Source: Octopus sinensis
Lineage: Eukaryota
Length of the DNA stretch: 64,000 nt
NCBI RefSeq assembly: GCF_006345805.1
Contig: NC_043006.1
Location: 52,452,001 to 52,516,000, forward strand
Direction: 5' to 3'
Translations under genes and position numbers: made by a program
In this document: positions 6,400-29,449 of the stretch, piece by piece
Position numbering within the stretch: the first letter of the stretch is position 1
How the letters are laid out: every line of letters starts with the position of its first letter
The notes under the pieces: model-generated
Database searches by the model: none
What the model was told of the DNA's origin: nothing
The model's input: the letters and a program-made list of their open reading frames with translations, nothing else

Positions 6400-8542
6400 T
6401 TTAGCATGACTTAGAAAATATTAACTTTGCCCATGAAGTTTACTTTTAGATAAATTGTGCAATTTGCTGAGACAAATTGTTCATGCTATTTACGTACTGG
6501 AATATGTTCACTGTTTTTGCTTCTGATGGTAAGAAAATCAACCCTTTAGCATTTAAAGCATCCATAATATTCTACGTCTTTTATATTCAAAGTGACCAAA
6601 TTTGGCCTGCTACACTTATCCTACACTGTCCCTTTAAAAATAAATAATCATATCAGTGATGCCTTTAAGCTACAATATAATACATGATTAATTCAAAACA
6701 ATATGAATAAACATTACATTTGACAGAGTAACCTGTATGCAAAGGGCGAACGAATTTACATTTATATTATAAGAACTTTGAAAACTTAATTTCTTTTGTA
6801 GATGATGATCTTGAAAGTACAACCAAATCTTTAACTGATGCAGATAAAAGCTCCAGTTCTAAAGTATCTATTCGAGATCTGAGAAAAGAAAATCGTAAAT
6901 CTGTAAACAATTCAAGTTTACGTGAAATTATTTAAAGTAAAATAGAACAGAAAATTTTGAAAGTTTTTGATATATGAACTGAACTATTTTGACAATATCC
7001 AGCTGAAAGTATTTTTCTCAGATGCATCAGATATACCAATTTATCTATGTTCTCTTGAAGTGAAATAAATTTAAGTTTGAAAACTATTGGTTGATATGTG
7101 TTGTTTATCAAACTTTTCTATATGAATGCATGCATACACATATTTATATATGCATGTATGTATTTATCCATCCAGTCATTTATATGTATGTGTCCATCCT
7201 TTCTCTTTCCAACCACCTACCCCTCTCTCTCTCCATCCATTACGCCAATCCAGTGATCAATCGATCGAGTGATGAATGGAAACTTGAAAAACATTAATAT
7301 GAATTTTGTTGAAATTGATTATTTTTTAATGACTAAAATTTAAAAAAAACTAGTGATATTCTGACTGTCTATATCCTGGTGCCAATAATAGTAGATTCTC
7401 CAGTGTATTCACTTTTGGAAAGCTTTTCTGATACATATCACTATCCATCTAAAGTTTGTTTTCCAGCTAGTAATGTCTCTTACAGAAATTGTGTTACTAG
7501 TAGGGATCCTGTCTTATAATGTCCACTACAGGATATTCATAATATAGATTTTACAATTTATAGACAATTATCAACAAGGTAACTACTGTCCTTTACAAAA
7601 ACTGTGAAGCACAACGAACAGCAACAGCTTCTTCATAAGCAAACTGTCCTGTGTTGGTTATGAAACCTCAAGGCAGTCCTCATCCAGCAGACCTATAACT
7701 AAAAACATTCCAGCTACACTTGACAAGTTCTTTGTTAAGGGAATGCATACCTAGGATTGCACTGCATTATTCAATGTGTTTCTACATATTGAATAAAGTA
7801 ATTTGAGAGAGATTTAGTGTATAATAGTGGAAGCTTCTATGTTGTAAACTAGTTCTATGATGTAGGATGCAAAATCACAACTGCTTATATATTTAAAACT
7901 ATCTGTATAGTATATTAAAGTGCATTGAGAAAAAAATATAGAGTGACTACGTTCAAAATAATTTGCATATCATCTTGTGATCTCAGCACTGGTTCCGATA
8001 TTTATATGACAGTGATATGTCTAAAGAACCCACAAAAAAAACCTTGAGGGGGAACGAGGGGAGAAATATGAAAAAGAAATTAAGTCCAAAAATAAAACAA
8101 AGACGTACTGTTAAAATTAGCTTAGTAATTTGTTTATTTCATTTTCAGAGCAATATTAATTAATCTAATCTAAAATAGGTTCTGTTGTTTTATTTGTTGA
8201 ATATGTCGTACATAGATTTGGTTGCAAATGCTTCAAGAAGAATTATGACAAAGAATTATGCATACGTTATTTTATTCTATAATCACAGGATAATGCATTT
8301 GAATTAGACAGAAATATTAACACGCACACACACACACACACGTGTGTGTGTGTGTGTGTGTGTGCATGTGTGTGTACATGCTCGCGCACGTGTGTGTATA
8401 GAGAAAATAATTGCTGTAGAAAATGAATATTCATTAATATATGCGCAAAATGAAACTAACATTTCCATATGGTGGAATGGATTCTTCATGTTCTCATATT
8501 GCAGGGAAAATAGTTAGAATAATGGAAATTCTGTTTGCTTGT

Positions 8543-8718
8543 TTATTGTCCGATATTGCATTTGGCAATGTATGGCCAATCACACACTTTCTTGACATTG
8601 TTGAAGTGCAAGTTTCCAGGGCAATCCTTTTTCTGGGCAATATTCCAGTCACACTGATAAAAATGTCTACAGCTTTGTGGGTCAGGGAAAAGACCTGTAG
8701 GTTCAGAACAGTTGAAGC
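8543..8718 (-). CDS. Copy A exon 11: chitin-binding type-2 (CBM14/peritrophin-A) domain and stop
   Basis: [57 protein letters not shown] has six Cys and the G.FPDP..C..FY.C...CP..L.FN....CDW pattern. Acceptor TTTTTCTCCTTAG|. Confidence 0.9.
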
Positions 8719-9307
8719 CTAAGGAGAAAAAGTAAACAAAATAAATTTTCATTACAAGTGTCAATTAAATGAATTTAGCATTTTAATTATCTCTATATTT
8801 TATGAAGTCAACATTTATCGATGATCACATTTATGTAATTGATTAGACTGGCAACATGAGGTGCGTGTGTGTGTATATATGTATCTATTTGTGTGTGCAA
8901 TTGTGATTGTGTGTATGTTTGTGTCTCCTTGTCTTGCTACTGCATAACTGTTGTAAATGAGTGTCACTTTCATAGAAGACTGTTTATTCATTTCCAGTAT
9001 CCTGCAAAAACATGTCTGGCTATAAGGAAATATTTTTTTTACTTGGAGACAGGTGTGGGTTGGCAGTAAAAAAGGTATTCAGCTCTAGAAAATCTGACAG
9101 ATGCAAGGTCTTATGTGCCTGCCTGACCTATGCAAGCATGGAAAAGGGGATGTTAAAACAATAATGATGAATTGCTTTAACTGCTTTTGGAAACCCAAAT
9201 CATTTCGTAAGAGAGACTGGTCTCTTTTTATCCCTTTAAAAACACAAGCAATTGTACATAACAACTCAGCTTCATTACATATGGATGAATCTTAAAAATC
9301 AACACAA

Positions 9308-9345
<38 letters not shown>

Positions 9346-12300
9346 GCGTACAAGTGGGTATTAATCAGAAGATAATGCATAGTGGCTGTGTAGGTTCTAT
9401 ACACTAAAATGAATATAAACACCACCACCACCACCATCATCTTCGTCAACTCTCATCTCAATTCATTCAAATTAGTGTTTTTTAACTATTTGTTTTCATC
9501 TATGGACCCCTTTGATTCCTGTTTTATTCAGGTGGACTCTGATGTTTAAAAAAGCCTATTATATTATTGATATTAAATAATACTAGGAATTGTATTAAAA
9601 CAATTGTTAAAATATTTTGTGCATTGTAGAAATATAACCGATTTACAGCACATAATTTTTAACAACAGAATCTTAGATGTACTCCTATATGGCAATGACA
9701 GATGAAGATAAAGCATGAGGAAGAGTTAAATCCTCTTAATCAGTTACTAAAATATATTTGCTTTGCATATTCAATGAACTGACTTGAGAAATTTCAAAAC
9801 GAATGTATATTTTTCTTTTCTATTTTTGTGTTTTAAAGAGAAAATTTTAACTTGATAATTTTTGTAAACAATATATTGTGAATGAAACCTTTTAACCAAA
9901 ACATACTAGCTGTCAGTATCAGAAAAGCTGGTCAGAATCTTATATTTCTTTCATATTTAACCCTGCATTGTAAAATAATTACCCTCAGCAAGAAGCTGTT
10001 TATCTAATCACTGCATAAATATCTGATGTATTTCTTACATTCGTTTTGTCACAATATGTATCAACTCGAACGTACTTACATCTCTGTTCCGTATACGTAA
10101 GTATCTCGTGTATTTGAAATTTCTGTTTTCCTCTTGATATATTTATGCCAACAGAACCATCTGTTTGTTGAATGCCCACCCTAAAGCTACTAACTTGAAA
10201 TCATTTAAATACATAGAACTAACGACACTCTTTTTTCTCATTTCTCAGGCAGTGAAGACGGATGCTTTAAATGGATATTCGCAGTTTTTTTCCTAGCCTT
10301 ATCAAGGCATAAAAAAATATACTCATGTGAACACATAATCGTTAAGGTGGGGGTAGTCAGTTTGAAAAACGCCAAATGAAATGATCAGAATAAATGTTAA
10401 TAATTTGAGCAAATCAAATAGGGAAAATGAATTTATTAACTCCTGAAATTTAGTAATAAATTAAAGGTATTGTACTTACTTGCTTGGCGGTCTGGTACTA
10501 CAAAAGAACAATATAAATCAAAAGCCATATTAGTTTCATTCATATACACATATGTTCGTGCACACAAACACATAACACACATCATGTAAGTCTCAGAATT
10601 GGGAAACGTTTACCAACTAAGATTAATCTTGGATTAAGAAACAAAAATTCCTTTATTAATATTTAAAATTTAAAAAAAGAACAAAAATAGTAAGATAGGG
10701 AACTCCAATAGCTGCAAGTTTACCGGTGTTTTTGCACGCGGAATGCTTCCATGAAATATTTCCGTTAGTTCCTTTAATACAATTATCTTGGTATATCTGT
10801 TTATTGCTTTTATAAGTTCTATTCTTATTCAAAGCAGCAAAACAATTTTACAGTTCAATGGGGGCAAATTTTTCCAGCAATATTCAAATGAAATGTTTAT
10901 ATGTGCAATAAACAAAAGCGATTTGAACTGGCACTTTCCAGAGGCTGGAAGAAGGTAATAAACGATTAAGCAATCTGATTTCGAGAACATCAGGGATTTT
11001 TCAAAATTTTAGAACTGTATAAGAAATTCATGAAAAAAATGTAAATTTGGAATATTAAAATTGTCAAAAGTTTTAAAATTATTAACTGTATTATAATTAT
11101 GTGTAATAGTAATTTGGTTTTATATTAATTTCTGGAAAAGATAGAAATAGGAAACAGTATATTCTAATTAATGTCCATACAATTTTTGAACGCATACCTA
11201 AGTAAAGTGAAAAGATTGTCGCTAGAAATCAAAATCGAATTATGGATCCGGTTCACAAGTACAAATTATGTAACATTAAACAGCTATGCTTACCTTCACA
11301 GTAGATTCCTTTAAAGCCAAATGGACATCGGCAACGTAATTGGTTGGCAGTGTGGATGCAGGTTCCTCCGTTAGAACAATGGCGAGACGGACAATAGATT
11401 GAACCACTTTCGTTACAAAACTTGCCAGACCATCCACTAGCACAAGTGCAAGTGAATCCATTTGGTCCAAACATGCTACACTGGCCGTTGTTTTGGCAAG
11501 GATTTGGAGTGCATGGATTGGTTTGACTGCCGCATCTCTGTCCAGTCCAGCCTTGTGGACAATAACAAGTAAAGCTGTTGCCCATAGGATAGCACTGTCC
11601 ACCGTTCAAACAGGGGTTATTCGAACAAGGCGTAGTGGTACTCCCACAGTTTTTACCACTCCATCCTTGGCGACACGCACAAATGTAGTCAAAATCATTT
11701 TGTACAATACATTGGCCATTATTCAAACATGGCTTTGAAGCACAAGGATCTCTTCTCGAACAATCTCGACCACCAAATCCGGGAGGACAGTCGCATATTC
11801 TTGTGTTTACATTACAAGTTCCTCCATTTTGACATTTTGGAGAGCACAGACTTGGGAACTGGCACCTATCTCCATAAAAGCCATTTATACATGCGCAAGT
11901 GATTTGATCGTTTACCAGCTGACATCTTCCACCATTTTGACAGATATTTGGATTTAACGCGCAATCATCTCTTCTTGAACAATCTGGACCAACGAATCCA
12001 TGACGGCAGTTGCACATTCTTGTGTTAGTGTTACAAATTCCTCCATTTTGACATGGTGGATAACACTGAATCGGCACCTGGCATCTATCACCTTGAAATC
12101 CATTGAGACATATGCAAGAAACTTGATTGTTTACAAGCTGACATGTTCCACCATTTTGACAGATATTTGGATTTAACGCGCAATCATCTCTTCTTGAACA
12201 ATCTGGACCAACGAATCCATGACGGCAGTTGCACATTCTTGTGTTAGTATTACAAATTCCTCCATTTTGACATGGTGGATAACACTGAATCGGCACCTGG

Positions 12301-15300
12301 CATCTATTACCTTGAAATCCATTGAGACATATGCAAGAAACTTGATTGTTTACAAGCTGACATGTTCCACCATTTTGACAGATATTTGGATTTAACGCGC
12401 AATCATCTCTTCTTGAACAATCTGGACCAACGAATCCATGAGGGCAGTTGCACATTCTTGTGTTAGTGTTACAAATTCCTCCATTTTGACATGGTGGATA
12501 ACACTGAATCGGCACCTGGCATCTATTACCTTGAAATCCATTGAGACATATGCAAGAAACTTGATTGTTTACAAGCTGACATGTTCCACCATTTTGACAG
12601 ATATTTGGATTTAACGCGCAATCATCTCTCCTTGAACAATCTGGACCAACGAATCCATGAGGGCAGTTGCACATTCTTGTGTTAGTGTTACAAATTCCTC
12701 CATTTTGACATGGTGGATAACACTGAATCGGCACCTGGCATCTATTACCTTGAAATCCATTGAGACATATGCAAGAAACTTGATTGTTTACAAGCTGACA
12801 TGTTCCACCATTTTGACAGATATTTGGATTTAACGCGCAATCATCTCTTCTTGAACAATCTGGGCCAACGAATCCATGAGGGCAGTTGCACATTCTTGTG
12901 TTAGTGTTACAAATTCCTCCATTTTGACATGGTGGATAACACTGAATCGGCACCTGGCATCTATTACCTTGAAATCCATTGAGACATATGCAAGAAACTT
13001 GATTGTTTACAAGCTGACATGTTCCACCATTTTGACAGATATTTGCTGAGCAAAATGGTTGTTCACATCGTAGTCCTCTGAGTCCAACAGGGCAACGACA
13101 AGTGAATTGAACTCCATTTGGATAGCATGTTCCACCATTTTGACACGGTGAAGATTGACAGGAATTAATGGGATTTTCACATCGTGGACCAGTAAATCCA
13201 GATGGGCAATTACATTTCGCAACAAAGTTAGTTGTAGTACATCGGCCACCATTTAGGCAAGTCACTGAGCGACATTTATCTTCAATTTGACAACGAGGAC
13301 CGTAAAAGTTAGGAAGACATTGGCACACAAATGATGTACCTGCATTCGAACATTGACCACCGTTCATACAAGGTGCTGACAAACATGCTGAAAGAACTAG
13401 ATTCAAAACAAAAACAAATTAACAGAATAAATCTACTTGATTTACTATTTAATAAAACAACATTCACTAAATCCATAAATGCCTTACTTAAATACAAACA
13501 CAAAAAAGATTCAGTTTTGTAAATAAGATAATGTTGTGCGTTTTTTTCCAACTGTTCTAAATTACAACTCGGTGGCAATGCTAGCACACTTAAGACGTCT
13601 TATAGCTAACTATAATTATAGCAGACCTGTTTAATACAGTATTATCGTTATTGAGTCAAAATCACTATCCGATTAGTATGATTGATTTACAATTACTAAT
13701 TTAGCCCACAGGTCATCTACAAAACGTCAAAAATTATTCTCAAATAGAAATTTAATTAAGATAAGATCATTTGATAATAGAAATAAAGATGTATTAAGTA
13801 AACGACTGCCGGACAATGATAATATATTTCACTTCGTTTGAATGATTTTTGTTTTACTTTTCTAAATATCTTTTTGTACCATGTAATCCCAATGCCGAAA
13901 TTAATGTGGTATTCAATGCAATTGCGAACATAAGCTTTATTTGTTGGTAGAAATTAGGTTATGTGAGATCCAGATATCACTCAGTAAGGAATGTGTCTCT
14001 CATATCTATGTTGGACACCATTAATCCCCGACTTCTTTGCATGCTTATAGATATATTCCAGATTATTAGAAATCTTCAAATCTAACCACTGGCTAGTTCG
14101 TTTTTAGCTTTAATAGTGAAATTCTTAACTTGCTGGATGAACCTTCTTCGTCACATCTCCGAGTTGCACACGTGTCATGCTCACGTGTTCCACTCCAAAT
14201 CCCGCTTCTACCTCTTAAACCCGATCATCATATTACAAACAGTAATTATAAAGACCTTTTACCTCACGAATGTTAATGTGATATACAGTAATACCTCGAC
14301 TATCGCGTATTTGACATTCCAAAACCTCCATCGATAGGTGAAAATCTACGAAGAAGGAGCAGCACTGTATATTATTATTATTATTTTTATAATTTTTATA
14401 TATTTATTTTATAAATGCATTTATGTTGTAAATGCAAAACAACACTACGGAGGAATCGACGTAAGCTCGAAAAATAAACTGTAATGGGTGAACCGTGATA
14501 TGCCGAGAGATTACTGTATTAGCAACCTCCTGTATCTTCTAGTCTGAGAATATCCTATCGCTTACCGACTTAGTCTTCCAACAAAATAAAGAGATAGGTC
14601 ACACATTTTTTATGTGGCTTTATATATGAAGAAGGAAAATGATTTTAGTAGAAAGATATTTCTAATTTGAAATTGAAAAAAAATTTCATTTAGTAAATTA
14701 ATAAGTCGCTATAAAGCTGCTGAAATAATTTATATTGACGATAGAATTCAAATCAATTGAAAGCAGTATTTGTTTTCTCCTTTTTCATATTTTTGATTAG
14801 ATATATCTTTAGAGTGCGTTGGTCTTTCTCAGTTTACCATGGAACTTGATGTCTAAATTGTTTGCAATACTTACATTTGCTGAAATTTTGGCATTAGTTT
14901 ATTATAGTGTTGTAAATTCAAATAGAAATTCATGATTCTTACCAGTCTCGCATTTGGGTCCCGTATAACCATATGCACATCTGCAGGAATAGCCATTAAT
15001 TCCGTCAACGCAAATACCACCATTTAAACAAGGAGTCGTCGTCAGACCGCATTCGTCGATCCCTAAGATAAATCAATATTAACCCATTTTTCACTTTGTT
15101 AAACTTTGTTCTGAAAACTCATTCCAGTTTAAAATAACACCAGAGGTATTGCAATATAATGCATGTTTTCATTGCTAGATTTTTTAGGGACTATTATTAA
15201 CACCTTCTCAACTATATTTGCAGTTAAATTCCACCTGCTTAAAAACATGTAGCTAACAAAAAATTGTTCGACAGTTAGATGCCTATCTACTTTTAAATGT

Positions 15301-18300
15301 TTACTTCCATTTATTTTAACGTGTTAATTATCCACTCATATCTGCATGGTATTAATGAAACTAGTACTAGATATTAACTTTTAACCACCATTAGCACCCA
15401 TAGTACTTCTTTTAGGACCAGAAAGATAATCTATTATATTTCTGCAACACCTGTATTTTAGCCATGAAGACTGGAGTGTTTTTTAAATATTGTAATAATT
15501 TTAAAAAATATATTTTGTATAGATAATGTTGTATAAATGAGATGTTTGGTATAAATCAAATAAAGAAGTTTGGGCACTAATGGGTTAACACCTCAACTAC
15601 CAAGAGCTTTATTTTTCACTCACAACGAATTATTATTGTCCAGTTAAACAAATGACCAAATAACCACTACTTGGAATATTTTTGAGGAGGTACATAACAC
15701 ACAAGCAGGTGGAATACATGTAGAACCAGACGGAATGCTGTATAAATATCTAATGTATTTAGAAGTGCAAATCTGAGAGTACATATGTTAAAGATGTCCA
15801 CGTTGAAAAGAGCTTATTCTATGAAATAGATTCAATTAACAGCATTGTTATAGCTAAAATAAAATACATGTTGATAATTTTCCGATTATTAGGATTAAAA
15901 AGTGTCACAAATTCCTACAAATAAAGTTTACAAGTTATAAGAAAAAAAGTAAATACCTTTATTACAATATTGTCCTGTGTATCCCTGTTTACAGTTGCAT
16001 CTAAACGTAGAGCCCATTGGGACACAGGTCGCACCATTTTTACAAGGAGAGCTGCGACATAGATCAGCTGAAAAAGTGTTGGCGATACATATCTTTTACG
16101 CACATATTTTCTTTCTATTTATATAAATAATGCAATTCCATAAAATGCAAGTGAATCAACTACATTTATTTCAGGAATGTATTTACAATCTCACAAACAG
16201 AGAATTTGTTGATATTTTAACAGAGATTTATCTACTTTGTATTGAATTGAGCAGTTGCCAGTGGAATGGACACCGTGTCAGTCAACAGGTGAAGGTGTCA
16301 AAGCATCATTTATTATATATTGAGAATAATGACAAAGATATTCAACTCTCGTTCATTAGAATGCTTCACCGTAAATAAGTATTATATAGCAGCGTAGCTT
16401 TCTGCTATACGGAGCAGGAGCCCTGTATAATAACGAATGTTTGTTTGCTTGCAATCATGTGCTTCTGTCTTGACTACAGATCAGAGAGACGCTATTTAAA
16501 TAAAAATAACAGGAGTTAATCCATCATGGATTAATACTGTTTTTTATTAGAAAAATGTCATGAATAATAATGGTATTTATGGGGTTTAAAAAAAAAAACT
16601 TCGATGACTCAGCTTTAGATCATCAAGAATTTGAAGTGCTAGGGATCAGATTCGCGATAATCGAAGTGCTAGCTAATCTTAAAGAAAATCGTATGAATAG
16701 AATGGGTTCTCGTCATTTCAATCTATACAGAAATTAAAACTTTAGCTTTAAATCTTTAGAAACAGTATAACATGAAGTATAATGCTTCAATTTAACAGGT
16801 AATATAGAAACATTTGTGTTGATTGAAATAAATGTAAACTTCCATCTACGCAATACCGTAGGAGAACAGTGTAAATAGTCCTATTTCTCTGTGTTATATA
16901 GACAAAAACCATACAAATGTCACGATACTTAGTAGTTTCTACCTCAACAGTCTGTTCAGTCGTATTGGGTGAAATTAATAACCAGTAAAATATATTTCAT
17001 TGCAGTTCTGCTATATGTGCATCAAAAACTATATGATGCTTGTACAGTAAGGACCTAGAATACACTGATGAACAGAAGATTAGTATGTTGAGTTTACAGA
17101 TGTATCCGAACGGAGCCCAATAACAACATTAGCAACACAAGCAGCAACAACAAAACAATAAATGATGCAAATGAGCTGCGTAGATGAACATTTGATATTA
17201 CAAAATAATAGAATCGTAATAGCAAAATAACTGAAGACTATATATATATTTTTTTTTACTAAAATTCGTCATAAGGCCAAAATTGTTTTAAGAAGAAATT
17301 GGTCCACATTTTATGAGTCCCTGGAAGCTGAAAGGTAAAACTGATCCAGGCGGGATTTGAATTCATGATGTAAAGAGACAGAAATAATATACACGTACCA
17401 TTAATATTACACAATGGACCAGAGAAACCAGGCTTGCAGACTTTTTGACCGTTAGCATCACACTGAAACCTCGTTTGCTCGCTGGTGGGAATATCACACC
17501 TGATGGCACAGTTCGGACCATAATAGCCTTGGCTGCAATAACTCTGAAATATAACAACAACAAAGACATTCTAAGACTTTGGAAAATAGAAAGGTTAAAG
17601 AAGAATTCTGATATTTTGATCATAAACGAACCGCTTTAAAAATATAAACGTTGGTGGTTTTGGTGTACGAGTTTTTATATATAGGTATGGTATTAAGACT
17701 GCGTGCTTTTCCATAATAAAATCAACTAACGTTGTTTAACATTTATTTATACAGCAATATACCCCAATATTTATAGTATAACATAATGACGTGCCAGTAG
17801 AGTATCGTGGTGTACTTATAAGCAAATGCAGTTAATAGTTACGTTAATAACAGAAATTACTAGCTTCACGTGAGAGGCGAAAGAAATACTCTGTTCGTTA
17901 TAGTCGACGATTTCTTTAACACAGGATTCAGTCTGTGCATCCTATGTATGGCTTTGATTTGTTTTGACTAAGTGTTGGCTGGTTACTTATTTGTGTGGCG
18001 AGAGATGAAGATATTGTGTTTATGCTATGTGCTTGGAAAAATGCATTGCTGACAAAGAAATTCTTTTAAACACAGGCCGAGCAGGAGAAAGAATCAAGTG
18101 TTCATTCAGCTTCTTGGACCTTCTCGAACCTCTGCGCTAATGCTTGCCGGCCTTGTTGCTTATATAAACTAATGTTTAAGAGTGAACCCGCGGAACATAA
18201 CAGAACATTCTATAATATGGAGTGGTATTTCTGCAAGCTGATTAGTTGGTATGCAAGGCACGTCACTGACCTAAGTGTGGGTTGCTACTAGTTACTTAAG

Positions 18301-20004
18301 CAGTAAGGTTTCGATTTTAGGCTTCGCCACGGGTTTATAGCATCATTTCTGAGTTTCTAAAGATGTTGAAAATACATTTTTAAGGGTAGATTGGACATAA
18401 AAATAATGCCAGATATTTTCACTACCATCTGCACATCAACTACCGTATGATACTCTACGTCCATGGCCTAGAATACATATGTACACAGAGAAGAAATGCA
18501 AGAGCTGTCAAGGATCTTTGACGATCGATGCTTTTGCTGTTCGCTTAGAGCTCTGTGTTGCTGCAGTAGCACATATCAGAATGAGAAATGCTCAAATCAA
18601 TTAAGATAGGTGGCATAGCATAATACCTAGATATTCCAAAGCAACTGAGATTAAAGTACTTACTCGAATTTGGTATGTCAGTTGACTAGTAGGGTTCTGA
18701 CTACCACGGGTTGTTATCAGTTCATACCTGGCTTCATCGACGCTTCTCTGAGGCAAATGACTACCACTTTGGTAAACGTAATCGGCTATCAATTCGTTGT
18801 TGCTTTTTGCAGTAAACGAAACAACGAATTTCTGAAAACAGAGGTTTGAAGGTATATATTATTGGAAATATGTACAACCAGATAGAACAATGAAATTATA
18901 AACGAGAATGCAAACACACTCTCTCTTTCTTTCCCTCTCTCTGTCTCTGTGGCTCTCTCTCTCATATACGTACCCACACACACACGCACACCCGTGTGGG
19001 TTTGCATAGCATAGCAGATTTATAGGTTATTCAATACATTAATTAATAAACATCTAGATTATTGAAAATATAATATATAATCGTGAATACCTTCATATAT
19101 GTTTTATTATGTTATTATAGCGTTGATTTATATATTTGTGAAGAAGAACGATCGTTGTTTCGCCTATATAACACATGTAAATAACAACAGTAAACTCAGT
19201 AATATTAGTTCTTATGTTGTCAGAAGGTCTCAGTTTTGGAAAATGCGAACGCTCTTATATTCATGCTTGTTTCGTAAGCATTAGTGATATAAGGGAAATG
19301 AATTGATTTACCCACGAGCAAGTAAATCGCCTCCGACTCTGATCTTGCTGCAAAACAATGAACCAACAGTCTATAATAATCGCTTCTAATTTAGACACGA
19401 AGGCCAGCAGTTTTCATTTAAGTCGGTAACATCTGAAGAGTTTTTCGGTTGGCCAATGTAACACCTCATGGAGGAAGCAATATGATAAATAGTGAGCTGA
19501 AAAGGTAAATGCTATTATTATCAGACTTTCCATTCTGTCGCGATCTGCCTGTCACAATCTAAGAAATACCACAATATTATCCTTTCCCAAGAAGTATTAA
19601 AACATCTAATCTAACTGCCGCCCACATTTCTTCTCTTTCAACAACGCAAGGAAAATAGAAAAATTTGTAAACAGCAACCTTTCAGTTCTGATTTCTTCGT
19701 TTTCTATATGATCACTACTGTAGTTTTCGTAGAAACAGATATACAGCATGTTGCTGTCTTAACTCATCAATGGTCTTTTTACATTCCTACTTTTGTCATA
19801 AGCTCAAGTTCTGTAGTATTGTTAGCGCGAGAACATCATAACATCGTTCTACAGACATGCTATCTATCTATAATATCTTTTGGATCAGAGGTCGATAAAT
19901 CTCAAGATCCAGTTATGTCTTCCAGTGAGTAAATGCAACACGTAATCAGTGAGTAGATTGTAGTTTCATAAATATGTGTGTGTGTTTATTTTTTAATACA
20001 CACA

Positions 20005-20037
<33 letters not shown>

Positions 20038-20043
20038 GCACGC

Positions 20044-20095
<52 letters not shown>

Positions 20096-20214
20096 GTGAT
20101 AAACTTAATATAGTAAGTTTGCATTTTGTAATGCCTATGTTGTGGAAAGTAAACAGTATAATCTTCGTATACAAAATATATAAATAAGTAAATAATAATA
20201 ACAACAACAACAAC

Positions 20215-20287
<73 letters not shown>

Positions 20288-21803
20288 TTTCAAGACTGGT
20301 CATCCGTCCTTCAGAGTTTTATCCTTCCAAAGAACGCTTGATAGCAATAAGTATTTAAATCAGTAACAAACGAAAAAAAACCTAGTTAAAATGGCTAGAC
20401 TGATTAGTACATATTGTAGACTGATTAGTATATATTAGCTGGCAACGTTATTCAATACGTAATGAATACTTTATTCACAAGCATATACTGGAAAATCTAG
20501 GATAAATTTAACGTAGTCATCCAATAATTCATAACGCCTCCCTTGGAAATTTAATAAATGTAAATGCATCATGCCATTTTTTGGAACTCGGGAAAATATT
20601 ATTCTGGCATATTTCGTAGCATGATTTAAATTGGGATTGCTATCCAGTTATCTTCACAAGAAGACAGAGTGGAAAACATCCTCTTGTCTTGAAAGTATAC
20701 ATCGAAAAGGCCAGGGAACAGAATAAAGAAGACATGCACCCAACACCAGAGCTGAAGACACCGTCGGTAGAGGAGTAGGGGCCGAAACCGGACGTGGTTC
20801 CTCCTGATGATGTCTTGAGCTAACTGGATTCTATAAAGTAGCTGTTGTGGTAGCAGACCACGAAACACGGTTGTAATTCCTCGCAATGAAACTAACAATC
20901 TTAAGAAATTATATTTTAAGAAACATCTCATTCCAAAACCAAACACTTACCTGAAACGGCTGTCTAATCAGGTACGTGATCGGATTACGTGCTCTACCGA
21001 TAAATACCTTATTTAGATCAATGACATTATCACCTAAAATTAATTTGAAAAAATGAAACAGAAATTATATTGGGATACGAGAGTGAAAATTTACAGACAC
21101 ACACAAGTACACAGATGATATAACCTTCCCATTCTCTCTAACCTCCAGTATAAAGATGTTATATACACATAACGTAGATATATTATCAGGCCAGACTGTC
21201 TGCACTCTCTCCATGTATACTGTCTGCATTAACTCCAAACTACACTGTCTCCATGTACAGAGACTTACTGTTATCTCTAGTGATGTTTTGTAAATCAAGT
21301 CTCTTTCTAATACTAAGCCACTCCAATAAGAAAAATATTACCCTTGTCTTTACATTCGTACAAATTACGCTAGATTATAATCATTCCACCGTATGTGGAA
21401 ATTTCTCTGGATATGTGTAATGTTTACTCATCTAGACAGAGTATTGATATTTCGTGTTATGCTTAAAACCAGTGCATATTACCAGGATTTTCCGACTGGG
21501 GTCGAATAGAAGAAACCATCTTAAATTCATGTTTGAGTCCCCGTATAAATGGAATAAGGTCTGGCTAGCTTGTTCTGGCATGGAGTTGTATAATATAAAA
21601 AAATGAAATTAAAGCAAGTAATGATACTTTCAAGGCATTTAATACCTGCGTTTCAGGTCGTAGCGCAATAAATAAACCAAAAGATATTTCAAAATATGAA
21701 CACGTTGATGGTTTTCGCCATGCATATATGGTTAACGAAATATATATATACATACATACATGGAGAGAGAGATAGAGAGAGAAAGAAAGAGAGAGAGAGA
21801 GGT

Positions 21804-21834
<31 letters not shown>

Positions 21835-22256
21835 AAGTGATAAGGAGTAATATCTAAATCTGAGTACCTAGGTACGTTAGTGTGTTATGTGAAGATATGA
21901 CTTCTTTTGTCTCCAGTTTCAGATAAAATTGGTTATGTGTTGCTGACATCTACCGAGGGCATTGTGAAACTCCACTTTTTCAATATTATGTTACTACTCT
22001 TCTTATTTCCTTCTTTCTAGCATCAAGTCTAAGTATTCGTTTGCCTCATCATTGTTACTGCCATCACTGATGATATATTGAGCACTTTCTTTCATAATTA
22101 GCATCATCTTACATGATTTTAGTCCCTCCTAAGGGAACCAATTGCCCCCTCATTTGAATTTCACGATCTATATCGCTATTAAATATTGCGTTGCATATAA
22201 AAGTCTCATGTAGAACCGATCGCTACGAAATAAACTCACTTGCACATTGATAAATG

Positions 22257-22336
<80 letters not shown>

Positions 22337-22547
22337 AATAAAAAGAATTCCAACCTTGTCTGATTTTCACGTTTTATTTACAATCTTATAATGATATATT
22401 ATAAGATAATATATTATAATTGAATAAAATAAAATGAAATAGTAGAATGTTAAATATTCATTCTGATTGAACTAGTACTTTCATGCATTGAATTCTGCAA
22501 TCTTCGGGTTCATGTAGTAGTGTTGACAGTCATGCTTCACAATTTTT

Positions 22548-22602
<55 letters not shown>

Positions 22603-24559
22603 CATATAGTTAATCAAAACATTAACAAAGAGAAAACACAACAACGTGAGAACGTGGAACAAGTATAGTGTTATTGGACGCTCAGGAAATGAAAGAAGAG
22701 AGGAGGATTTAACGTTTCAAGCGGAGAACTTCGTCAGAAACATAGAAAAAGGAAAGGTCCAAGGAAGGGAAGACGGAGGAAGAAAATCGCCAACGATACA
22801 CACGCGGTCATATATTGAATGACCGGAAGGGAATGGGTGAAGAAAAAGTTCTTTCAAAGACTGTAGAGTGCAAGAGAAGGAGGTATATGTGTGTGTGTGT
22901 GGGTATGTGCGTGCACGCAAGTCTACGTGTGCGTGTGTGTGTGTGTAATGATAGCACTTGTGTCTGTGTATCTGTGTGTGTGTGGTTGTGGCTGTTTATC
23001 TATGTGTGTGGTTGGGCTTAGTATTGTTTAAGGTCATAGGAAGAATTTATAGTAGGTGTGGCTCCTGTTGTTGGTCTACCTACACATGTGCGTAGGAAAA
23101 TGGTCAGTGGAAGGTTCTGGTAGCTTGAAATATGTGTGTGTGCGTGTATGTATATGAGGTGTGTGTGTGTTTTGTTTGAAGTGTGTGTATGTGTATGTAT
23201 GTAGATGTGTGTTCGCGTGTGTATGTGTGTATGCGTAGGGGCTGTGTGTGTGGGGAGTAATTACATTTTCCTTTGTGTATGTGTGCATGTGTGCTTGTAT
23301 GTGCATATGCGTGTGTACATGTATGTATAATTGTGTGCGTGTATGTACGAGGGTGAGCTGTGTGTGTATGGGAGGTATGTGCGGGTTTATTGCGTGTGCA
23401 TGTGTGTGTTTTATGTGCGTGTGTATATACACGGGTGTGCGTATGTACATGTATGAGTATGTGCGTGTGTATTTTGTTTGTGTGCATGTGTGTGTGAACG
23501 AGGGGTTGTGTAGGGGGTATATAGGGGCGTTTCTTGCGCGTGTATGCATGTGGGTACATACACGTGTATCTGCGTGTAAATGTGTATGTGCGTGTGTGCG
23601 TGCGTATGTGTACGCATGTTTGAGTGTGCATATATGTGTGTCTGTGTCTATATGTGCATGTGTATGTGTGTGTGCGGCGTGTATGCATATATTGTGTGTG
23701 TATGTATATGCATGGGTGTGTATGTGAATTTGTGTATGCGTGTGTGCGCGGATTGTGTGTGTGGTTTTTCGTGGGGTTTGTGTAGGCGTACATGTGTGTA
23801 TGTGATTGCGTGTACATGTGCGTGCGTGTGCTAGTGTGGGTGTGCTTACGTGCGTGTATGCGTGTATGTGCGTGTGTATTTCTGCCCATGTATGTATAAA
23901 TGTGTGCCTGTCTGTATGTGTATTGTGTGTTGGAGGCATATGTACGAACCTGTGCTAGTGTGTGTGTGTATGTATTAAGTGTGTATATGTGTGTGTGCGT
24001 GTATTAATTGCGTATGTATGTGCGTGTGTATGTATGTGCGTGTGTGCGTGTGTATGTGCGCGCGTGTGTATATGTGTGTGTGAACGTGGAGATGTGTGTC
24101 GGGTTATGTGTGGGATTGATATCTGTGCATTCCTGTGCGTGTGTATGTGTGTGTGTGTGTGCGCGTGGGTGTATGTGGGTGCATGTGTGTATGTATGCGT
24201 GTGTGCATGTGTGTGGAAGTATGCGTGTATATGTGTATGTATGTGTGTTGTATGTGTGGTGTGTGGGAGGCGCATGTGCGTTCGTGGATATGTACGTATG
24301 TGTGTGTATGTGTGCGTGTATATAGAAATAAAAACAATAATTCATAAAAACAATAAATTATAAACAATAAAATAACAAAAAAATTATAAAAACAATAAAA
24401 TATAAAAATTAAAGCAATCGTGCTTTAGATACAATAGATATATCAAATATATCAAATATATTAAATACATCAAATGCAACATATGTATATATGTATATAC
24501 AGTATATATCTGTACATGCAACAGGAGAGGAACCAAAGCTGGAAACTTTCAGATGATGA

Positions 24560-24601
<42 letters not shown>

Positions 24602-25544
24602 AATTGATCTGCGTAAAAAGGCCAACAAGAAGAATATTCCATCTAATGAGAGTCCAATATTAATGTATGTGTTTCAGTCCGCATGTACTATACGCGTTAC
24701 TACTAGTTACATGTGCAAGGCAAATACGTTCATCAGGCGCTGCTTATTCAATGAAACCAAGAAGTTTAAATAGAGGACCGGACGAGATGTGACGCTAAAG
24801 CAAACAATATTTAATGGAAGATTCCACTACAGGTAGCCAACAAATTAAGGTTTCAAATGTATTTAATTCGAAAATATACACAAAAAAACAAAGTAAAATG
24901 ATAAAGTTATAAATTATAAAAATCATGAAAATTAAGCTAAATTATAAATGAGTCAATATATAAAATATATATAGATCTACACGTAATTCAAAGGCTATAC
25001 GAGTATATACAATACATGAATTATACAAGTACATAAAAATACAATATACATAAATTGCATAAAATTATAAGTGGGGTAGACTCTATGGTGTCTGTTATAA
25101 TGGTCTATACTTATAATATGTAGCAATTACAAAAGGGATATAAAGGATGGAAAAAATATAATGTAGATATAAATATGAGATATAAATCGATACAGTGAAG
25201 GAAGAAACTATATCTATATTCCTAGGTGTTATAACGAAAGATAGGAGAGCAAAATGACCAATCAATCAGGAATCGGTGGAATCTCCCAGTTTTTAAAGAT
25301 AAATTTAAACATGTGTTTACATCCACTAAAAATCGCTGACCTCGGATCTAAAGAACATCTGCGGCCTTTCGGCCAAGGAAAGCGTACATCTATTAGACAT
25401 ATTCATGTATGGTTTAGACCCTTCTATTATTCTCCATTTGATCACATATGGTACATTATTCTCATTTTTTCTCATACATGTATGTATGTATACATATATA
25501 TATGAATATATATGTATGAATATAAATATATGTATATATATATA

Positions 25545-25608
<64 letters not shown>

Positions 25609-26055
25609 CATATAAACATACTTGTGTGTGTATATGTATGTATGTAGATATTATGTATGTACGTATATGTATGTATATATATATATGTGTGTGTGTGTGT
25701 ATGAATATATATATATATAATTATATATATATATATATATATATATTTAATGTAAGATAAAATTTTTTCGTTAAAACCTCCCCAGAATAATTTTATCAAT
25801 GGCCAGCATATAAAAAAATACCTTTAAAGGTTAAATTTATAAACAACTTATAAATGAGGGCAAACGAAAAAATTTCTAATGCCCAGTATTCCGAAATTAG
25901 ACATAATGTCCATAACCATCATATTTTTTTCACAATACGCACGCTCCTTTCTGGAGTAGCGTGCGTATTCTGAAAAAAATATAATGGTTATGGACATTAT
26001 GTCTAATTTCGGCATATTTGGCATTAGAAATTTTTCGTTTGCCCTCATTTATAAG

Positions 26056-26113
<58 letters not shown>

Positions 26114-27546
26114 TCATGCATACACAAACATATAATCTCATGCAAATATACATACACGAATATATACCTATGCATAAAGACACACATGTGTCTAAAAATA
26201 AATTATATAGAATGTGTGTGTGTGTGTGTGTGTGCACGAGTGTTCGGTTTGTAAGGAATCCGAGACAGAATACTTACAGAAGTTATTGTAGCAAGAAAAG
26301 CGCAGAGCAGGAATCTACTGGTTGATTGAAAATTGTCTAATTAAGTATTGTCGTATGAGCTTTTAGATACATAGTGTATTTATAATGTGTATCACCTGTC
26401 CATTCGTCCCTGCGTTTTTTAAAAATTGCTTCACATGTACATAAAGCGTTAATGCAAATATCGTTAGTTCCTTTCTACACTGTTCAGGCTGAGAATTATA
26501 TTTACCCATTCCTATTCTAATGAATTTAGTAATGAAAAAGATGTCTGGTACTTAAAAAGTACCCAAACTGACACACGTAGAATCATATAAAAATACAAAA
26601 CAAGTCATCTTGATATAGATTTGAACTTGAATCCTGGAATCTCGCTAGTTTTATTTTTATGGATAAACATGTACTTACCGATAACTCCTGTTTTAGTCTC
26701 ACCATAACGACACAATGTCGAAGTATCATCAGGTCTAGCACAAACATGAAGAGTCGTTTGACATTGTTGACTTCCGAAATTGGAACATTTGCGTCCATTA
26801 GCCAGTAAACGGTTGTAATTTTCAAACTTGATAAACTTCACATCAATTACATAGTCGGCTACAATTGGCTGTAAAATATCAGTAAGAACACTTTATGAAA
26901 TATGTTTCTATAGCATTTACGATTTATTTCTGACTTCTTCTCTTTATATGCAGTATGTCTATGGGCAGATAAACATTTATTGATAGCATTTCATCTGAAA
27001 CTGAGTACCTATTCTATCCTACCCACTTTGCTAAACCGTTAAGTTACGAAACATAAACAACCATAACTAATTCAAAATCACGAGAGTCGAAGACAAACAC
27101 AAAGTAATGCATTTATGGCAGCCTTATACCCAATTTCTGTTCACCATATTCACTCACAAGGGTTTGGTCGATTCGGAACTATAGCAGAATATTTTCCCCC
27201 AACGTGCTGTAAAGTTAAACTGAAGTCGAAACTAAATGCTTGTGAAGCGGTCTTCGTAACCTCAAAGCTATACCTGCACTTCTTTATATATAATAAGCTA
27301 GTAGACAGATACAACGGAATCAACGAGGTCAGTTTCAGCCCATTGGTGAGGATATTTAAGCTCTGTGTATGTATGTATGTATGTATGTATGTATGTATGT
27401 ATGTATGTATGTATGTATGTATGTATGTATGTATGTATGTATGTACGTATGTATGTATGTGTATATGTATGTATGTAGATATTATGTATGTACGTATGTG
27501 TATGTATATATATATATATATGTGTGTGTATGAATACATACATATA

Positions 27547-27633
<87 letters not shown>

Positions 27634-27899
27634 CCATACATACACATACATGCAATCACATGCAAATATACATGCACGCATACATATGTATGCATAAAGA
27701 CACACATGTGTCTAAAAATGAATTATACAGAATCTGTGTGTGTGTGTGTGTGTGTGTCTGTGTGCGTGCGCGTGCGCAATATATGTTTTCGGGCGTGCGC
27801 GCGAGTGTTCGGTTTGTAGGGAATCTAAAACAGAATACTTACAGAAATTATTGTAGCAAGAAAAGCGCAGAGCAGGAATCTACCGGCTGATTGAAGCAT
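8543..27899 (-). CDS. Copy A: secreted Delta-like (MNNL/C2-DSL-21xEGF) protein with C-terminal chitin-binding type-2 domain, 10 coding exons, 1056 aa
   Basis: Join (minus): 27843-27899, 26679-26868, 20951-21033, 18664-18831, 17399-17543, 15957-16067, 14943-15062, 11294-13396, 10480-10497, 8543-8718. Total 3171 nt = 1057 codons with no internal stop. All junctions are GT-AG with matching phases (0,1,0,0,1,1,1,1,1), and every exon has a colinear counterpart in copy B. Confidence 0.88.
10480..10497 (-). CDS. Copy A exon 10: 18-nt microexon (V)PDRQA
   Basis: TTGTTCTTTTGTAG|TACCAGACCGCCAAGCAA|GTAAGTAC; same length and splice sites in copy B. Confidence 0.7.
11294..13396 (-). CDS. Copy A exon 9: 19 EGF-like repeats
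   Basis: Lies inside ORF 11253..13406. Acceptor TTTTGAATCTAG|, donor GAAG|GTAAGC; 2103 nt, phase 1-1. Confidence 0.93.
11930..13044 (-). repeat. Intra-exonic tandem array: five 219-bp (73-aa, two-EGF) units
   Basis: GACAGATATTTG recurs at 11939, 12158, 12377, 12596, 12815 and 13034. The units differ only by scattered SNVs (P/R, N/D). Confidence 0.95.
14943..15062 (-). CDS. Copy A exon 8: calcium-binding EGF domain
   Basis: (G)[39 protein letters not shown] has IDEC and the C.D....Y.C consensus; phase 1-1. Confidence 0.9.
15957..16067 (-). CDS. Copy A exon 7: EGF-like domain
   Basis: (A)[36 protein letters not shown]; phase 1-1, GT-AG. Confidence 0.88.
17399..17543 (-). CDS. Copy A exon 6: DSL domain
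   Basis: [48 protein letters not shown] shows six Cys with DSL spacing (C...YYG..C...C...F.C...G.KVC.PG..GP.C). Confidence 0.88.
18664..18831 (-). CDS. Copy A exon 5: C2 domain C-terminal part
   Basis: [56 protein letters not shown]. Bounded by TTTTCAG| and |GTAAGT; 168 nt in both copies. Confidence 0.82.
20195..20284. repeat. (AAC)n(AAT)n microsatellite
   Basis: Directly visible; source of the poly-Leu ORF 19986..20303. Confidence 0.95.
20951..21033 (-). CDS. Copy A exon 4: C2 domain middle
   Basis: (G)[27 protein letters not shown]; NPI matches the Delta NPIxF motif. Bounded by TTTTAG| and |GTAAGT; 83 nt in both copies. Confidence 0.8.
22870..24325. repeat. About 1.4-kb degenerate (TG/TA/CG) dinucleotide mosaic, copy-A-specific
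   Basis: Alternating purine-pyrimidine low-complexity sequence producing the spurious His/Thr and Val/Cys ORFs. Confidence 0.9.
25845..26057. mobile_element. Foldback MITE-like palindrome (about 213 bp)
   Basis: The left arm AACTTATAAATGAGGGCAAACG... is the reverse complement of the right arm almost to the centre; TA duplication is plausible. Confidence 0.7.
26278..26336 (-). pseudogene. ATG-less duplicate of the signal-peptide exon inside intron 3 of copy A
   Basis: Near copy of 27843-27899 that keeps the GTAAGT donor. ATGCTTC is replaced by AATTTTC. Flanks 25600-26400 resemble 27450-27960. Confidence 0.75.
26679..26868 (-). CDS. Copy A exon 3: MNNL/C2 domain, N-terminal part
   Basis: [63 protein letters not shown](G) follows the Delta N-terminal pattern F.N...LL.N..C / C.T...VC / C.YG...T.V.G. 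Bounded by TTTACAG| and |GTAAGT. Confidence 0.85.
27843..27899 (-). CDS. Copy A exon 2: signal peptide [19 protein letters not shown]
   Basis: ATG, basic residue, hydrophobic core, then donor GTAAGT. Joins in phase 0 to PIVA/DY, a plausible cleavage site. Confidence 0.85.
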
Positions 27900-28017
27900 G
27901 CTGATTGCCTTATTAAGAATTGTCTTATGAGCTTTTAGATATACAGTGTATTTATAATGTATATCACTAGTCCCCTTGTCCTTGCAAAGGCGACGCTAGT
28001 CTACGTATTGAACTCAC

Positions 28018-28090
28018 AGAGAGCTCCGGTGTGAAAAGAACGCACTGAATTCTCTGAATATGTCCGGTGAACAAACAAGGCAATTCTGGT
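28018..28090 (-). other. Putative non-coding exon 1 of copy A (counterpart in copy B about 59635-59705)
   Basis: Minus-strand donor CT|GTGAGT at 28012-28017 (B: 59629-59634) lies just downstream of a TATAAAT box in both copies. The TSS is estimated from TATA spacing only. Confidence 0.55.
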
Positions 28091-28112
28091 AGGCAACGCG
28101 AGAAAGCCCAGT

Positions 28113-28201
28113 ATTTATAGGATATGGTCAGTGGGAATAATAGCGTATGCCAAAGTTTACACGAAGTTGTACGTGTTTGAATGTTGCGCCAGATGACCAA
28201 T
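28113..28201 (-). promoter_or_regulatory. Core promoter of copy A: TATA box plus CCAAT motif
   Basis: Minus-strand TATAAAT at 28113-28119 and CCAAT at 28197-28201, about 220 nt upstream of the ATG. Both are retained in copy B. Confidence 0.55.
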
Positions 28202-29172
28202 GAAAATGGATCTGTAGATATTTGTTTTTCTAATCGTACCAATCAAGGCATCATTATAGGTAAGAATAAGGAAAAGGAAACGATGGAAAGAAAAAGGAGG
28301 GGATAAAGAGGAAAAGAATACCAGCACTAACGGCGAGTGTGACATCGATGACAGCAAGAAAAAAAAAAAAACACGTATGAAGGTGTGGAAAGGAAATGAC
28401 TGAAAAGAAATTTTTCTGTTGTAAAGTCTAGTAACAAATTTGAAAATGTGTAGGAGTTTTATAGTTTTAACGTAAACAAAATGAACGAAACCTTTTAAAG
28501 CAAATTTTATGACGAAAAGATAAATAAAAATTAGACATACAATTATACAATATCTATTTTGGTTTTTGTTGCTGTTGCTGAAAAGTTTACTACGGAAAAT
28601 TTGGATTCAAAGAACAATGGACAACATTTAGAGATGTAACTATGCAAGTGACGAAGCACTTCGACAGTTAAAACAGCACAAGAACTGGGCAGCAGATGGA
28701 ACATTTAATTACTGCTCTAGTATATTTTTTCAGTTATATATACTTCACATTCAAATTGATATTATTAATTTCCCACGATTGTTAGCATTACTCTCTGACA
28801 AATGTCAAGAAACATATAATAGACTTTTTGCCAAAATAAATGAATTACTGCAGAATGAGGGACCTGATAATATAATTATGGATTTCGAAAAAGCTGCCCA
28901 TAACGGATTTCTGGAATAGTTTCCAGGGTCGAATTTGGCATGCTGCTTGATTCATTTAGAAGACAATGCGTACAAGTCTGTTGTGCAAGAAGGACCAAAA
29001 TGCAGATATCACGAAGAAGACAGTTTTAGTCTAAAAATGCGGTGCTCTTTTGCCCTTGGCTTCCTGCCAGTTGATGATGTTGTAGATGGATATAAACAAC
29101 TTGCAGATGATGATGATATTCCACAGTCAATTGTATCCTATTCTGAGAACAATTATATAGGACCACCTAGAG

Positions 29173-29367
29173 CAGTGATTCCTAACCTGGGGTCTGCAGA
29201 CCCCTGGAGGTTCGCAAAGGTAGTACTGGGTGTCCGTGAACTAAATTTAAAATTTCATATATATATATATATATATATGTATACACAAAAGGATATGCAT
29301 GTTAAAAGGGGTCCGTGGGAAAACTTATTTAAACAATAAGTTTGGGAGCCGCTGTTGGGAACCACTG
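29173..29367. mobile_element. hAT (Charlie-type) MITE
   Basis: TIRs CAGTGATTCCTAAC / GTTGGGAACCACTG. 8-bp TSD ACCTAGAG / ATCTAGAG (7/8 match) fits the nTCTAGAn preference. Confidence 0.8.
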
Positions 29368-29449
29368 ATCTAGAGAGAAAGAGGACAGAGGAGGCGACGC
29401 CTTGAACTTTTATTTCCATTACCCATATGGAATGTTTGGGATCGATGTA

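Follow-up and report, generated by a model that had tools for sequence, protein, structure and literature searches.

An Octopus sinensis gene joins a Notch-ligand ectodomain to a chitin-binding domain

Our subject is a gene within a 64,000-nucleotide stretch of Octopus sinensis DNA (assembly GCF_006345805.1, contig NC_043006.1, positions 52,452,001 to 52,516,000 of the forward strand). We refer to this whole stretch as the window, and coordinates are positions within it. The window contains two tandem copies of the gene, copy A and copy B, both on the minus strand. Each is predicted to encode a secreted protein that begins like a Delta/Jagged-type (DSL) ligand of Notch and ends with a CBM14, or peritrophin-A, domain. 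DSL ligands are membrane proteins, and their activity depends on anchoring.

Copy A extends from an ATG at 27899 to the last base of a TAA stop codon at 8543. Open stretches were located and exon borders were then read. Every intron has AG and GT borders, and the ten exons join in one open frame. The coding sequence is 3171 nucleotides (nt) and the protein is 1056 amino acids (aa). A sequence-only reading of this DNA had proposed a ten-exon, 1056-aa open frame; our rebuilt model reproduces its length and end coordinates exactly. The exons of copy A are as follows.

27899-27843, minus strand, exon 1: ATG and signal peptide; phase-0 donor GTAAGT
26868-26679, minus strand, exon 2: first part of the C2/MNNL domain; MNNL 30.6 bits over residues 27-104
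21033-20951, minus strand, exon 3: C2/MNNL continued; aligned with DLL4, JAG1 and DLL1 structures
18831-18664, minus strand, exon 4: C-terminal half of C2, last residues LTYQIR
17543-17399, minus strand, exon 5: DSL domain, six cysteines, divergent face; Pfam DSL about 43 bits
16067-15957, minus strand, exon 6: EGF 1, of ordinary rather than DOS type
15062-14943, minus strand, exon 7: EGF 2, with an IDEC start
13396-11294, minus strand, exon 8: 19 EGF units within one 2103-nt exon; phase-1 donor
10497-10480, minus strand, exon 9: 18-nt micro-exon, 7-residue linker VPDRQAS
8718-8543, minus strand, exon 10: CBM14/peritrophin-A domain, six cysteines, then TAA; phase-1 acceptor; CBM_14 53 bits

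The junction between the EGF units and CBM14 matters most for the gene model. The micro-exon is flanked by a pyrimidine-rich TAG acceptor and a GTAAGT donor, and is skipped in some database isoforms. With phase 1 at both the exon 8 donor and the CBM14 acceptor, these exons join in frame whether or not it is included. The CBM14 exon has no ATG and no signal peptide of its own. Hence, it cannot be a separate gene. Exon 8 is itself internally repetitive. Between 11748 and 13045 (minus strand) it holds 5.9 tandem repeats, 95% identical, of a 219-nt unit that codes for two EGFs.

The protein has no membrane anchor

The encoded protein has the order signal peptide, C2/MNNL, DSL, 21 EGF units, 7-residue linker, CBM14 and stop. 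Pfam scans were run on isolated pieces of protein, with cut-offs of 24.2 (DSL), 22.5 (MNNL) and 22.1 (CBM_14) bits. For copy A, DSL scored 42.6-43.9, MNNL 30.6 and CBM_14 48.3-53.0 bits, and there were many EGF matches. Thus, the four domains that the sequence-only reading had named all score above cut-off when scanned as isolated pieces. Cysteine counts agree: 126 lie between DSL and the linker, equal to 21 six-cysteine EGF units, and DSL and CBM14 have six each. EGF 2 is the only unit that follows a start of the D-x-D/N-E-C type (IDEC). This start suggests calcium binding, and the Pfam EGF_CA score is 18.5 against a cut-off of 27.

Note that scanning full-length proteins gives a different result. 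Full-length hmmscan of family members (P0003 and P0127) misses both CBM_14 and MNNL, which reach 48-56 and 27-34 bits, respectively, when the domains are scanned in isolation. Precomputed domain lists also lack CBM_14 for the long isoforms. Hence, with full-length scans of such cysteine-rich proteins, architecture searches under-count the family.

Secretion was called with hydropathy as the sole criterion. The only hydrophobic 19-mer in copy A is in the N-terminal signal region (residues 4-27), with a Kyte-Doolittle value of 2.1. Beyond the signal peptide the maximum is 0.66, and in eight relatives of copy A it is between 0.6 and 1.25. By comparison, gastropod DSL-EGF proteins from Haliotis (P0011) and Bradybaena (P0025) have a helix at 3.0, followed by a short tail. 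We scanned all minus-strand frames after exon 8 for a hydrophobic exon and found only AT-rich or microsatellite-derived stretches. One hydrophobic stretch in intron 9 is common to copies A and B (9384-9440 and 45453-45509). It was rejected as an exon; it is a translated trinucleotide/TG microsatellite, in an intron about 79% identical throughout, and is used by no model. With this intron 9 repeat as the only shared stretch, the earlier statement that no conserved hydrophobic exon separates the EGF exon from the last exon stands. The same architecture, with no transmembrane helix, is found in all tandem copies and in Argonauta (see below), and the gastropod proteins have such a helix. Hence, it is fair to describe the membrane anchor as replaced by CBM14.

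The Notch-binding face is replaced

The N-terminus (residues about 5-200) aligns over its full length with the structures of DLL4, JAG1 and DLL1, with E values of about 1e-10 to 1e-11. Hence, descent from Notch ligands is clear. Across the family members tested, Pfam DSL scores are 37-51 bits and so above the cut-off.

In human Jagged1 (aligned segment FCRPRDDFFGHY), the DSL face residues F199, R201, R203, D205 and F207 are required for cis and trans interactions (PMC3415683). At these five positions, copy A has R, D, P, S and Q. All five are replaced in each of the six family sequences aligned, Argonauta included (RCVIQASEQDRF). What replaces them is conserved within the family, as RC[DE]IPxxEQxRF in Octopus and as RCVIQASEQDRF in Argonauta. 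Since a different, family-conserved motif occupies the face, the C2-DSL head would not be a canonical Notch-binding surface. We also used a motif for the canonical face, [FL]C[RKGV]PR[DN][DEG]..GH[YF]. It occurs in none of 11 family members and in eight of nine Jagged controls. Similarly, the DOS consensus, taken from PMC2504490, matches none of the 11 and five of the nine controls. Scores for Pfam EGF_DL_JAG (14-20 bits) and JAG1-like_EGF2 (17 bits) fall below the 27-bit cut-off.

Note that DSL ligands without a DOS motif, such as LAG-2, still signal (PMC2504490), and DLL3 is another genuine ligand that lacks it. Since accepted ligands can be DOS-less, and the replaced face is conserved, there is room for binding to Notch or to another partner. 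Octopuses also have canonical ligands. Their motifs are CRPRDDKFGH in Delta1, CRVRDDELGH in a second Delta and CRPRNDSFGH in Jagged (PMC8166818 supplement). We considered whether the octopod DSL-CBM14 family is the mollusc 'Delta2' of PMC8166818. This was rejected: the octopus Deltas listed there are other accessions (XP_014769856.1 and XP_014771450.1) and have canonical motifs.

The C-terminal domain resembles chitin-binding domains of known structure

The cysteine pattern of the CBM14 domain is C-x12-C-x5-C-x9-C-x12-C-x7-C. This spacing appears to be peritrophin-A-like. All six cysteines, together with F51, F60, Y61, W65, F79 and W88, are invariant in seven of seven members. Matches in the PDB span 3e-10 to 0.02. 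The best are to a chitinase's C-terminal CBM14 (3e-10), to tachycitin, to Der p 23 and to the chitin-binding domain (ChBD) of chitotriosidase; squid chitin-binding beak protein 3 is a weaker match.

Copy B and the tandem array

Copy B spans 59505 to 44603, and is colinear with copy A over exons and introns, with identical splice sites. Its exons are as follows.

59505-59449, minus strand, exon 1
58903-58714, minus strand, exon 2
56360-56278, minus strand, exon 3
53568-53401, minus strand, exon 4
51996-51852, minus strand, exon 5
51058-50948, minus strand, exon 6
50258-50139, minus strand, exon 7
48553-47442, minus strand, exon 8; 1112 nt, shorter than in copy A
46325-46308, minus strand, exon 9
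44778-44603, minus strand, exon 10

The two copies had been said to share one architecture, and this is borne out by the ten matching exons and by Pfam (MNNL 34.1 and CBM_14 52.7 bits, with DSL above the cut-off). Identity between copies is 78-95% in exons and 73-92% in introns. The ratio of nonsynonymous to synonymous substitution (Ka/Ks) is 0.51 for exons 1-7, 0.46 for the C2-DSL part and 0.82 for the short CBM14 exon. Across paralogues and isoforms (429-1056 aa) the number of EGFs varies from roughly 4 to 21. The O. vulgaris orthologue of copy A has equal protein length. In O. bimaculoides, and in other paralogues, there are fewer of the 219-nt units.

Exon 8 of copy B has a frameshift near 47768-47790 (minus strand), where a run of A is four bases long instead of five. 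The same assembly includes an unplaced scaffold, VCDQ01001822.1 (L001), which matches the window at 94-99.5% identity; we treated it as an alternative haplotype. The frameshift site is intact in this scaffold (about 14680), and in the O. vulgaris orthologue. Hence, the lesion is an assembly error or a polymorphism; likely sources are a long-read homopolymer error or a polymorphic null allele.

Several other features of the array were noted. The stop codon lies within AATAAA in both copies, at 8536-8548 (GGACAATAAAC) and 44596-44608 (GAAAATAAAC), minus strand. This AATAAA may act as a polyadenylation signal; the Argonauta equivalent is AAATAAG. Intron 2 of copy A has a fragment resembling exon 1 (26206-26340, minus strand), with no start codon and located downstream of exon 2, which we read as partial duplication of the promoter/exon-1 region inside copy A. 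Near intron 2 the haplotype scaffold is structurally different: it matches the copy B exon-2 region twice, and its alignments to window positions 26057-27754 overlap. The same intron has long microsatellites rich in (TG/CA)n and (TA)n, at 22700-24400 and 25300-27700. These give rise to spurious open reading frames (ORFs), of up to 287 aa and on both strands, that are rich in His, Thr, Cys and Val.

Transposons make up the GC-rich DNA that separates the copies and follows them, at 29696-30568 (minus strand), 34074-37020 (plus strand), about 2147-4161, and 38236-39279. They include the remnant of a Mos1/mariner-type transposase (Transposase_1 80 bits, HTH_48). A non-long-terminal-repeat retrotransposon is also present, its ORFs encoding endonuclease and reverse transcriptase (RVT_1 113 bits), and there are two partial copies besides. 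An Rfam scan of the window gave no match.

The architecture is conserved in Argonauta hians

A locus from Argonauta hians (L002) has the same order, beginning with three exons for MNNL and one for DSL. Two EGF exons come next, then a third of 2115 nt, and finally a CBM14 exon and a stop. Pfam scores are 27.2 (MNNL), 50.6 (DSL) and 56.5 (CBM_14) bits. From DSL to CBM14, exon sizes are 145, 111, 114, 2115 and 176 nt in Argonauta, compared with 145, 111, 120, 2103 and 176 nt in Octopus. These five Argonauta exons join in an 886-aa open frame with no transmembrane helix (Kyte-Doolittle maximum 0.99). The CBM14 exon follows the EGF exon, and its phase and size are identical to those in copies A and B.

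In the exons for DSL and EGF 1, the proportion of synonymous differences between Octopus and Argonauta (pS) is 0.76-0.84, which is saturated, and the nonsynonymous equivalent (pN) is about 0.25. This argues for purifying selection. All cysteines and splice sites are kept between the two genera. We conclude that, given its conservation in Argonauta, the architecture predates the Octopus-Argonauta split and has been maintained by selection.

The Argonauta record divides this region into two gene calls, a 93-aa product with MNNL only (10001-12985) and an 893-aa product covering DSL to CBM14 (14274-21029). Two further MNNL exons are apparent; one straddles the end of the first call (12947-13033) and one is between the calls (13922-14095). 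The two calls are probably one gene.

Several public records are chimeric and the family appears confined to octopods

The 1056-aa protein is an exact substring of RefSeq XP_036362847.1, a 1441-aa entry named 'fibropellin-1-like'. This entry is a chimera, in which the 3' half of copy B is linked to copy A by translation of intergenic DNA and of the copy A 5' untranslated region. Similarly, Gnomon isoforms X1-X9 either mix exons of more than one tandem copy or finish by reading through into an intron, and models on the haplotype scaffold also mix exons of different copies. Annotation of the tandem array, over window positions 27900-44602 and the cluster, is unreliable.

Predicted relatives with the same N-terminus and linker-CBM14 end exist in O. 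vulgaris. An example is CAI9727907.1 (1056 aa), and models CAI9727904-14 form a run on one chromosome. In O. bimaculoides, predicted relatives with the same ending are XP_014781344-6 and XP_052826417-9. Automatic names for relatives include 'neurogenic locus notch homolog 1-like', 'jagged-1b-like' and 'Delta-like protein'. An exhaustive HMMER search of 1.84 billion representative proteins, with the C2-DSL region as query, returned five matches below 1e-30, four of which were traced to Octopus. The next matches fall to 84 bits and are cnidarian multi-DSL proteins, of 33-36% identity. A profile of six family N-termini matched only Octopus species and one Argonauta hians fragment. Among 292 fetched proteins, a model of the family CBM14 matched only Octopus proteins and one unrelated chitinase fragment. 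A search with the last 144 residues (EGFs, linker and CBM14) gave three candidates and missed the identical RefSeq protein, and so is uninformative about distribution. Judging from these sequence searches, the family is octopod-restricted and tandemly duplicated.

The sequence-only reading knew of no fusion of this kind. Consistent with this, we found no paper describing the DSL-CBM14 architecture. The proteins themselves are not new; they are already in RefSeq and UniProt, and a 2021 survey of 138 lophotrochozoan DSL genes lists their DSL domains, with chitin never mentioned (PMC8166818). In the files of that survey, the DSL-domain list is the one place where the family occurs. That the architecture is undescribed may be technical, since full-length hmmscan and precomputed lists omit CBM_14. 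Family accessions and names are absent from an octopus skin-mucus proteome supplement, and a paper on the argonaut eggcase matrix makes no mention of the family.

A chitin-anchored matrix protein is the favoured interpretation

We favour, with moderate confidence, an octopod-specific secreted matrix protein: a chitin-anchored EGF rod that has co-opted a ligand ectodomain. The CBM14 domain would fix the C-terminus to chitin, with the sucker lining, beak and radula sac, and gut cuticle as candidate sites. The EGF rod, stapled by disulfides, would be a spacer or load-bearing element, as in the octopus protein octovafibrin. At the opposite end, the C2-DSL head may provide a second binding site, for membrane lipid or another matrix partner. 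Without a canonical Notch-binding head, the protein would be a cross-linker or tether of chitinous matrix rather than a signal. The tandem array, in-exon repeat, variable EGF number and Ka/Ks of about 0.5 also seem more typical of a matrix or secretory protein than of a developmental ligand. The sequence-only reading had put forward both a matrix role and a Notch ligand or decoy. The first of these is now favoured. The second is weakened by the replaced DSL face, the lack of DOS and the Ka/Ks of about 0.5.

Some points count against a matrix role. Loss of the Jagged-type face is no proof of lost Notch binding, and the face is conserved in the family. High Ka/Ks and tandem amplification suit immune recognition proteins equally well. 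Chitin binding is predicted solely from a profile match. All family proteins in databases are computational models, and several are visibly chimeric between tandem copies. Finally, AlphaFold2 returned predicted local distance difference test (pLDDT) scores of 46 for the N-terminal 251 residues and 38 for the C-terminal 98, with shallow family alignments; these are too low for the folds to be judged.

The alternatives can be compared using the same data. If the protein were a chitin-tethered Notch ligand or decoy, its head would bind Notch on neighbouring epithelial cells. The chitin anchor would replace the mechanical resistance otherwise due to endocytosis, or the protein would sequester Notch. 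Immobilised on a surface, ligand ectodomains can activate Notch, and soluble ones inhibit it, which counts for this explanation. So do C2/MNNL and DSL profiles above the Pfam cut-offs, the end-to-end alignment of the whole N-terminal region with DLL4, JAG1 and DLL1, and within-family conservation of the DSL region, with purifying selection on it between Octopus and Argonauta. It is also in favour that ligands such as LAG-2 signal without DOS (PMC2504490). The missing DOS-type EGF1-2 counts against it. So does the face: the five residues described in PMC3415683 are replaced in all six sequences aligned, and the canonical motif is found in none of 11. Furthermore, canonical octopus Delta and Jagged proteins with an intact CR[PV]R[DN]D coexist with the family (PMC8166818). 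Canonical ligands are only weak matches to the family profile, identity to the nearest proteins outside octopods is 33-36%, and Ka/Ks of about 0.5, tandem amplification and variable EGF number are unlike developmental ligands. We judge a ligand or decoy to be distinctly unlikely. A more specific version is that the conserved replacement face binds octopod Notch, or another EGF receptor, with the chitin anchor making it a force-bearing immobilised ligand; we regard this as a long shot. If it were true, Notch could be activated without ligand endocytosis, and this would pattern the epithelia from which chitinous structures are secreted.

Together with the chitin-tethered ligand, the main rival to a matrix role is a secreted protein of immune or surface recognition, itself unlikely on the evidence at hand. 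Its CBM14 would recognise the chitin of fungi, parasites or prey, and aggregation, or attachment to host cells, would be the task of the EGF rod and C2-DSL head. A lineage-specific tandem family, with relaxed constraint (Ka/Ks 0.46-0.82) and variation in copy and repeat number, is what this predicts, and relatives of CBM14 include tachycitin, an antimicrobial chitin-binding peptide. However, we found no evidence of haemocyte or mucosal expression, the skin-mucus supplement being without family accessions or names, and a long rigid rod that ends in just one CBM14 is closer to matrix linkers than to familiar lectins. Doubts about the gene itself carry far less weight. Predictors misled by the array could have borrowed the CBM14 exon from another gene or missed a transmembrane exon, and RefSeq models in the cluster are indeed chimeric (XP_036362847.1, and isoforms mixing copies), some ending by intron read-through. 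The hydrophobic stretch shared by intron 9 of copies A and B might also be cited. However, that stretch is a translated microsatellite used by no model. The CBM14 exon has a phase-1 acceptor and neither start codon nor signal peptide, it follows the EGF exon with the same phase and size in copies A and B and in Argonauta, and an annotated 893-aa Argonauta gene covers DSL to CBM14. We consider an artefact very improbable. Equally hard to credit is a decaying duplicate family with no current function. The copy B frameshift in this assembly, and the Ka/Ks of 0.82 for the CBM14 exon, are in its favour. Yet the frameshift is one base in a run of A, absent from the haplotype scaffold and from O. vulgaris, and copy A is open over its full 3171 nt. 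Cysteines and splice sites are also kept between Octopus and Argonauta, despite saturated synonymous sites.

The wider significance can be stated in terms of these readings. In a lineage-specific family, an anchor to carbohydrate has taken the place of an anchor in the membrane, an arrangement retained since before Octopus and Argonauta diverged. If the product is a matrix protein, as we favour, a signalling ectodomain would plainly have been turned into building material, and the chitinous structures of octopods might contain it. In that case, it would join octovafibrin as a protein of biomaterials interest. If the head still engages Notch, the family would provide a natural test of the pulling-force model. 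A practical pitfall is that full-length profile scans of cysteine-rich proteins under-report the octopod DSL-CBM14 family.

Comparison with known systems

Canonical DSL ligands (Delta, Serrate/Jagged, DLL1/4 and JAG1/2) share with the octopod protein a signal peptide, C2/MNNL, a six-cysteine DSL and EGF repeats. The octopod protein differs in having no transmembrane helix or cytoplasmic tail, a replaced face, an ordinary EGF1-2 and a CBM14 end. The octopod family is also tandemly amplified and fast-evolving. By score, the nearest relatives outside octopods are gastropod DSL-EGF proteins (Haliotis rubra 'fibropellin-1-like', P0011, and Bradybaena, P0025) and cnidarian multi-DSL proteins. Identity is 33-36% for the cnidarian proteins, over the N-terminus, and 30-37% for the gastropod proteins, in the best local alignment with the whole query. 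The gastropod proteins resemble the octopod one in their C2-like N-terminus and in a DSL placed directly before ordinary or calcium-binding EGFs. Unlike it, they have a strong transmembrane helix (3.0) and a cytoplasmic tail, and no CBM14.

Non-canonical DSL proteins are already known (PMC2504490, PMC2064846, PMC8166818), and mollusc 'Delta2' is said to have lost its transmembrane segment (PMC8166818). In secreted ligands of the C. elegans DSL-1 type, DLL3 and 'Delta2', the anchor and/or DOS is absent, or Notch is not trans-activated. Unlike the octopod family, none of them has been described as carrying a carbohydrate-binding domain.

In overall design the protein resembles octovafibrin and the sea-urchin fibropellins, which are also secreted EGF rods with a binding head and tail; the resemblance is one of design. 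Octovafibrin, the closest functional precedent from octopuses themselves, is a load-bearing egg-tether protein of O. bimaculoides (XP_014771937.1); its 29 EGFs are flanked by a lectin domain at each end (PMC10336842). Its repeats are non-calcium-binding, and those of the octopod DSL-CBM14 protein mostly lack the calcium consensus. The terminal domains differ, being C-type lectins, or CUB or avidin-like domains, in octovafibrin and fibropellins, and C2-DSL and CBM14 here. Octovafibrin and fibropellins are extracellular structural material; for the octopod family we infer such a role.

The C-terminal end resembles that of other CBM14 proteins (chitinase ChBD, tachycitin, Der p 23 and squid beak protein 3) in its six cysteines, length of about 55 residues and conserved aromatics. 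Known partners of CBM14 are chitinase catalytic domains, mucin-like linkers and further CBM14 copies. In the octopod protein, CBM14 is instead a single terminal domain, fused to an ectodomain of the Notch-ligand type.

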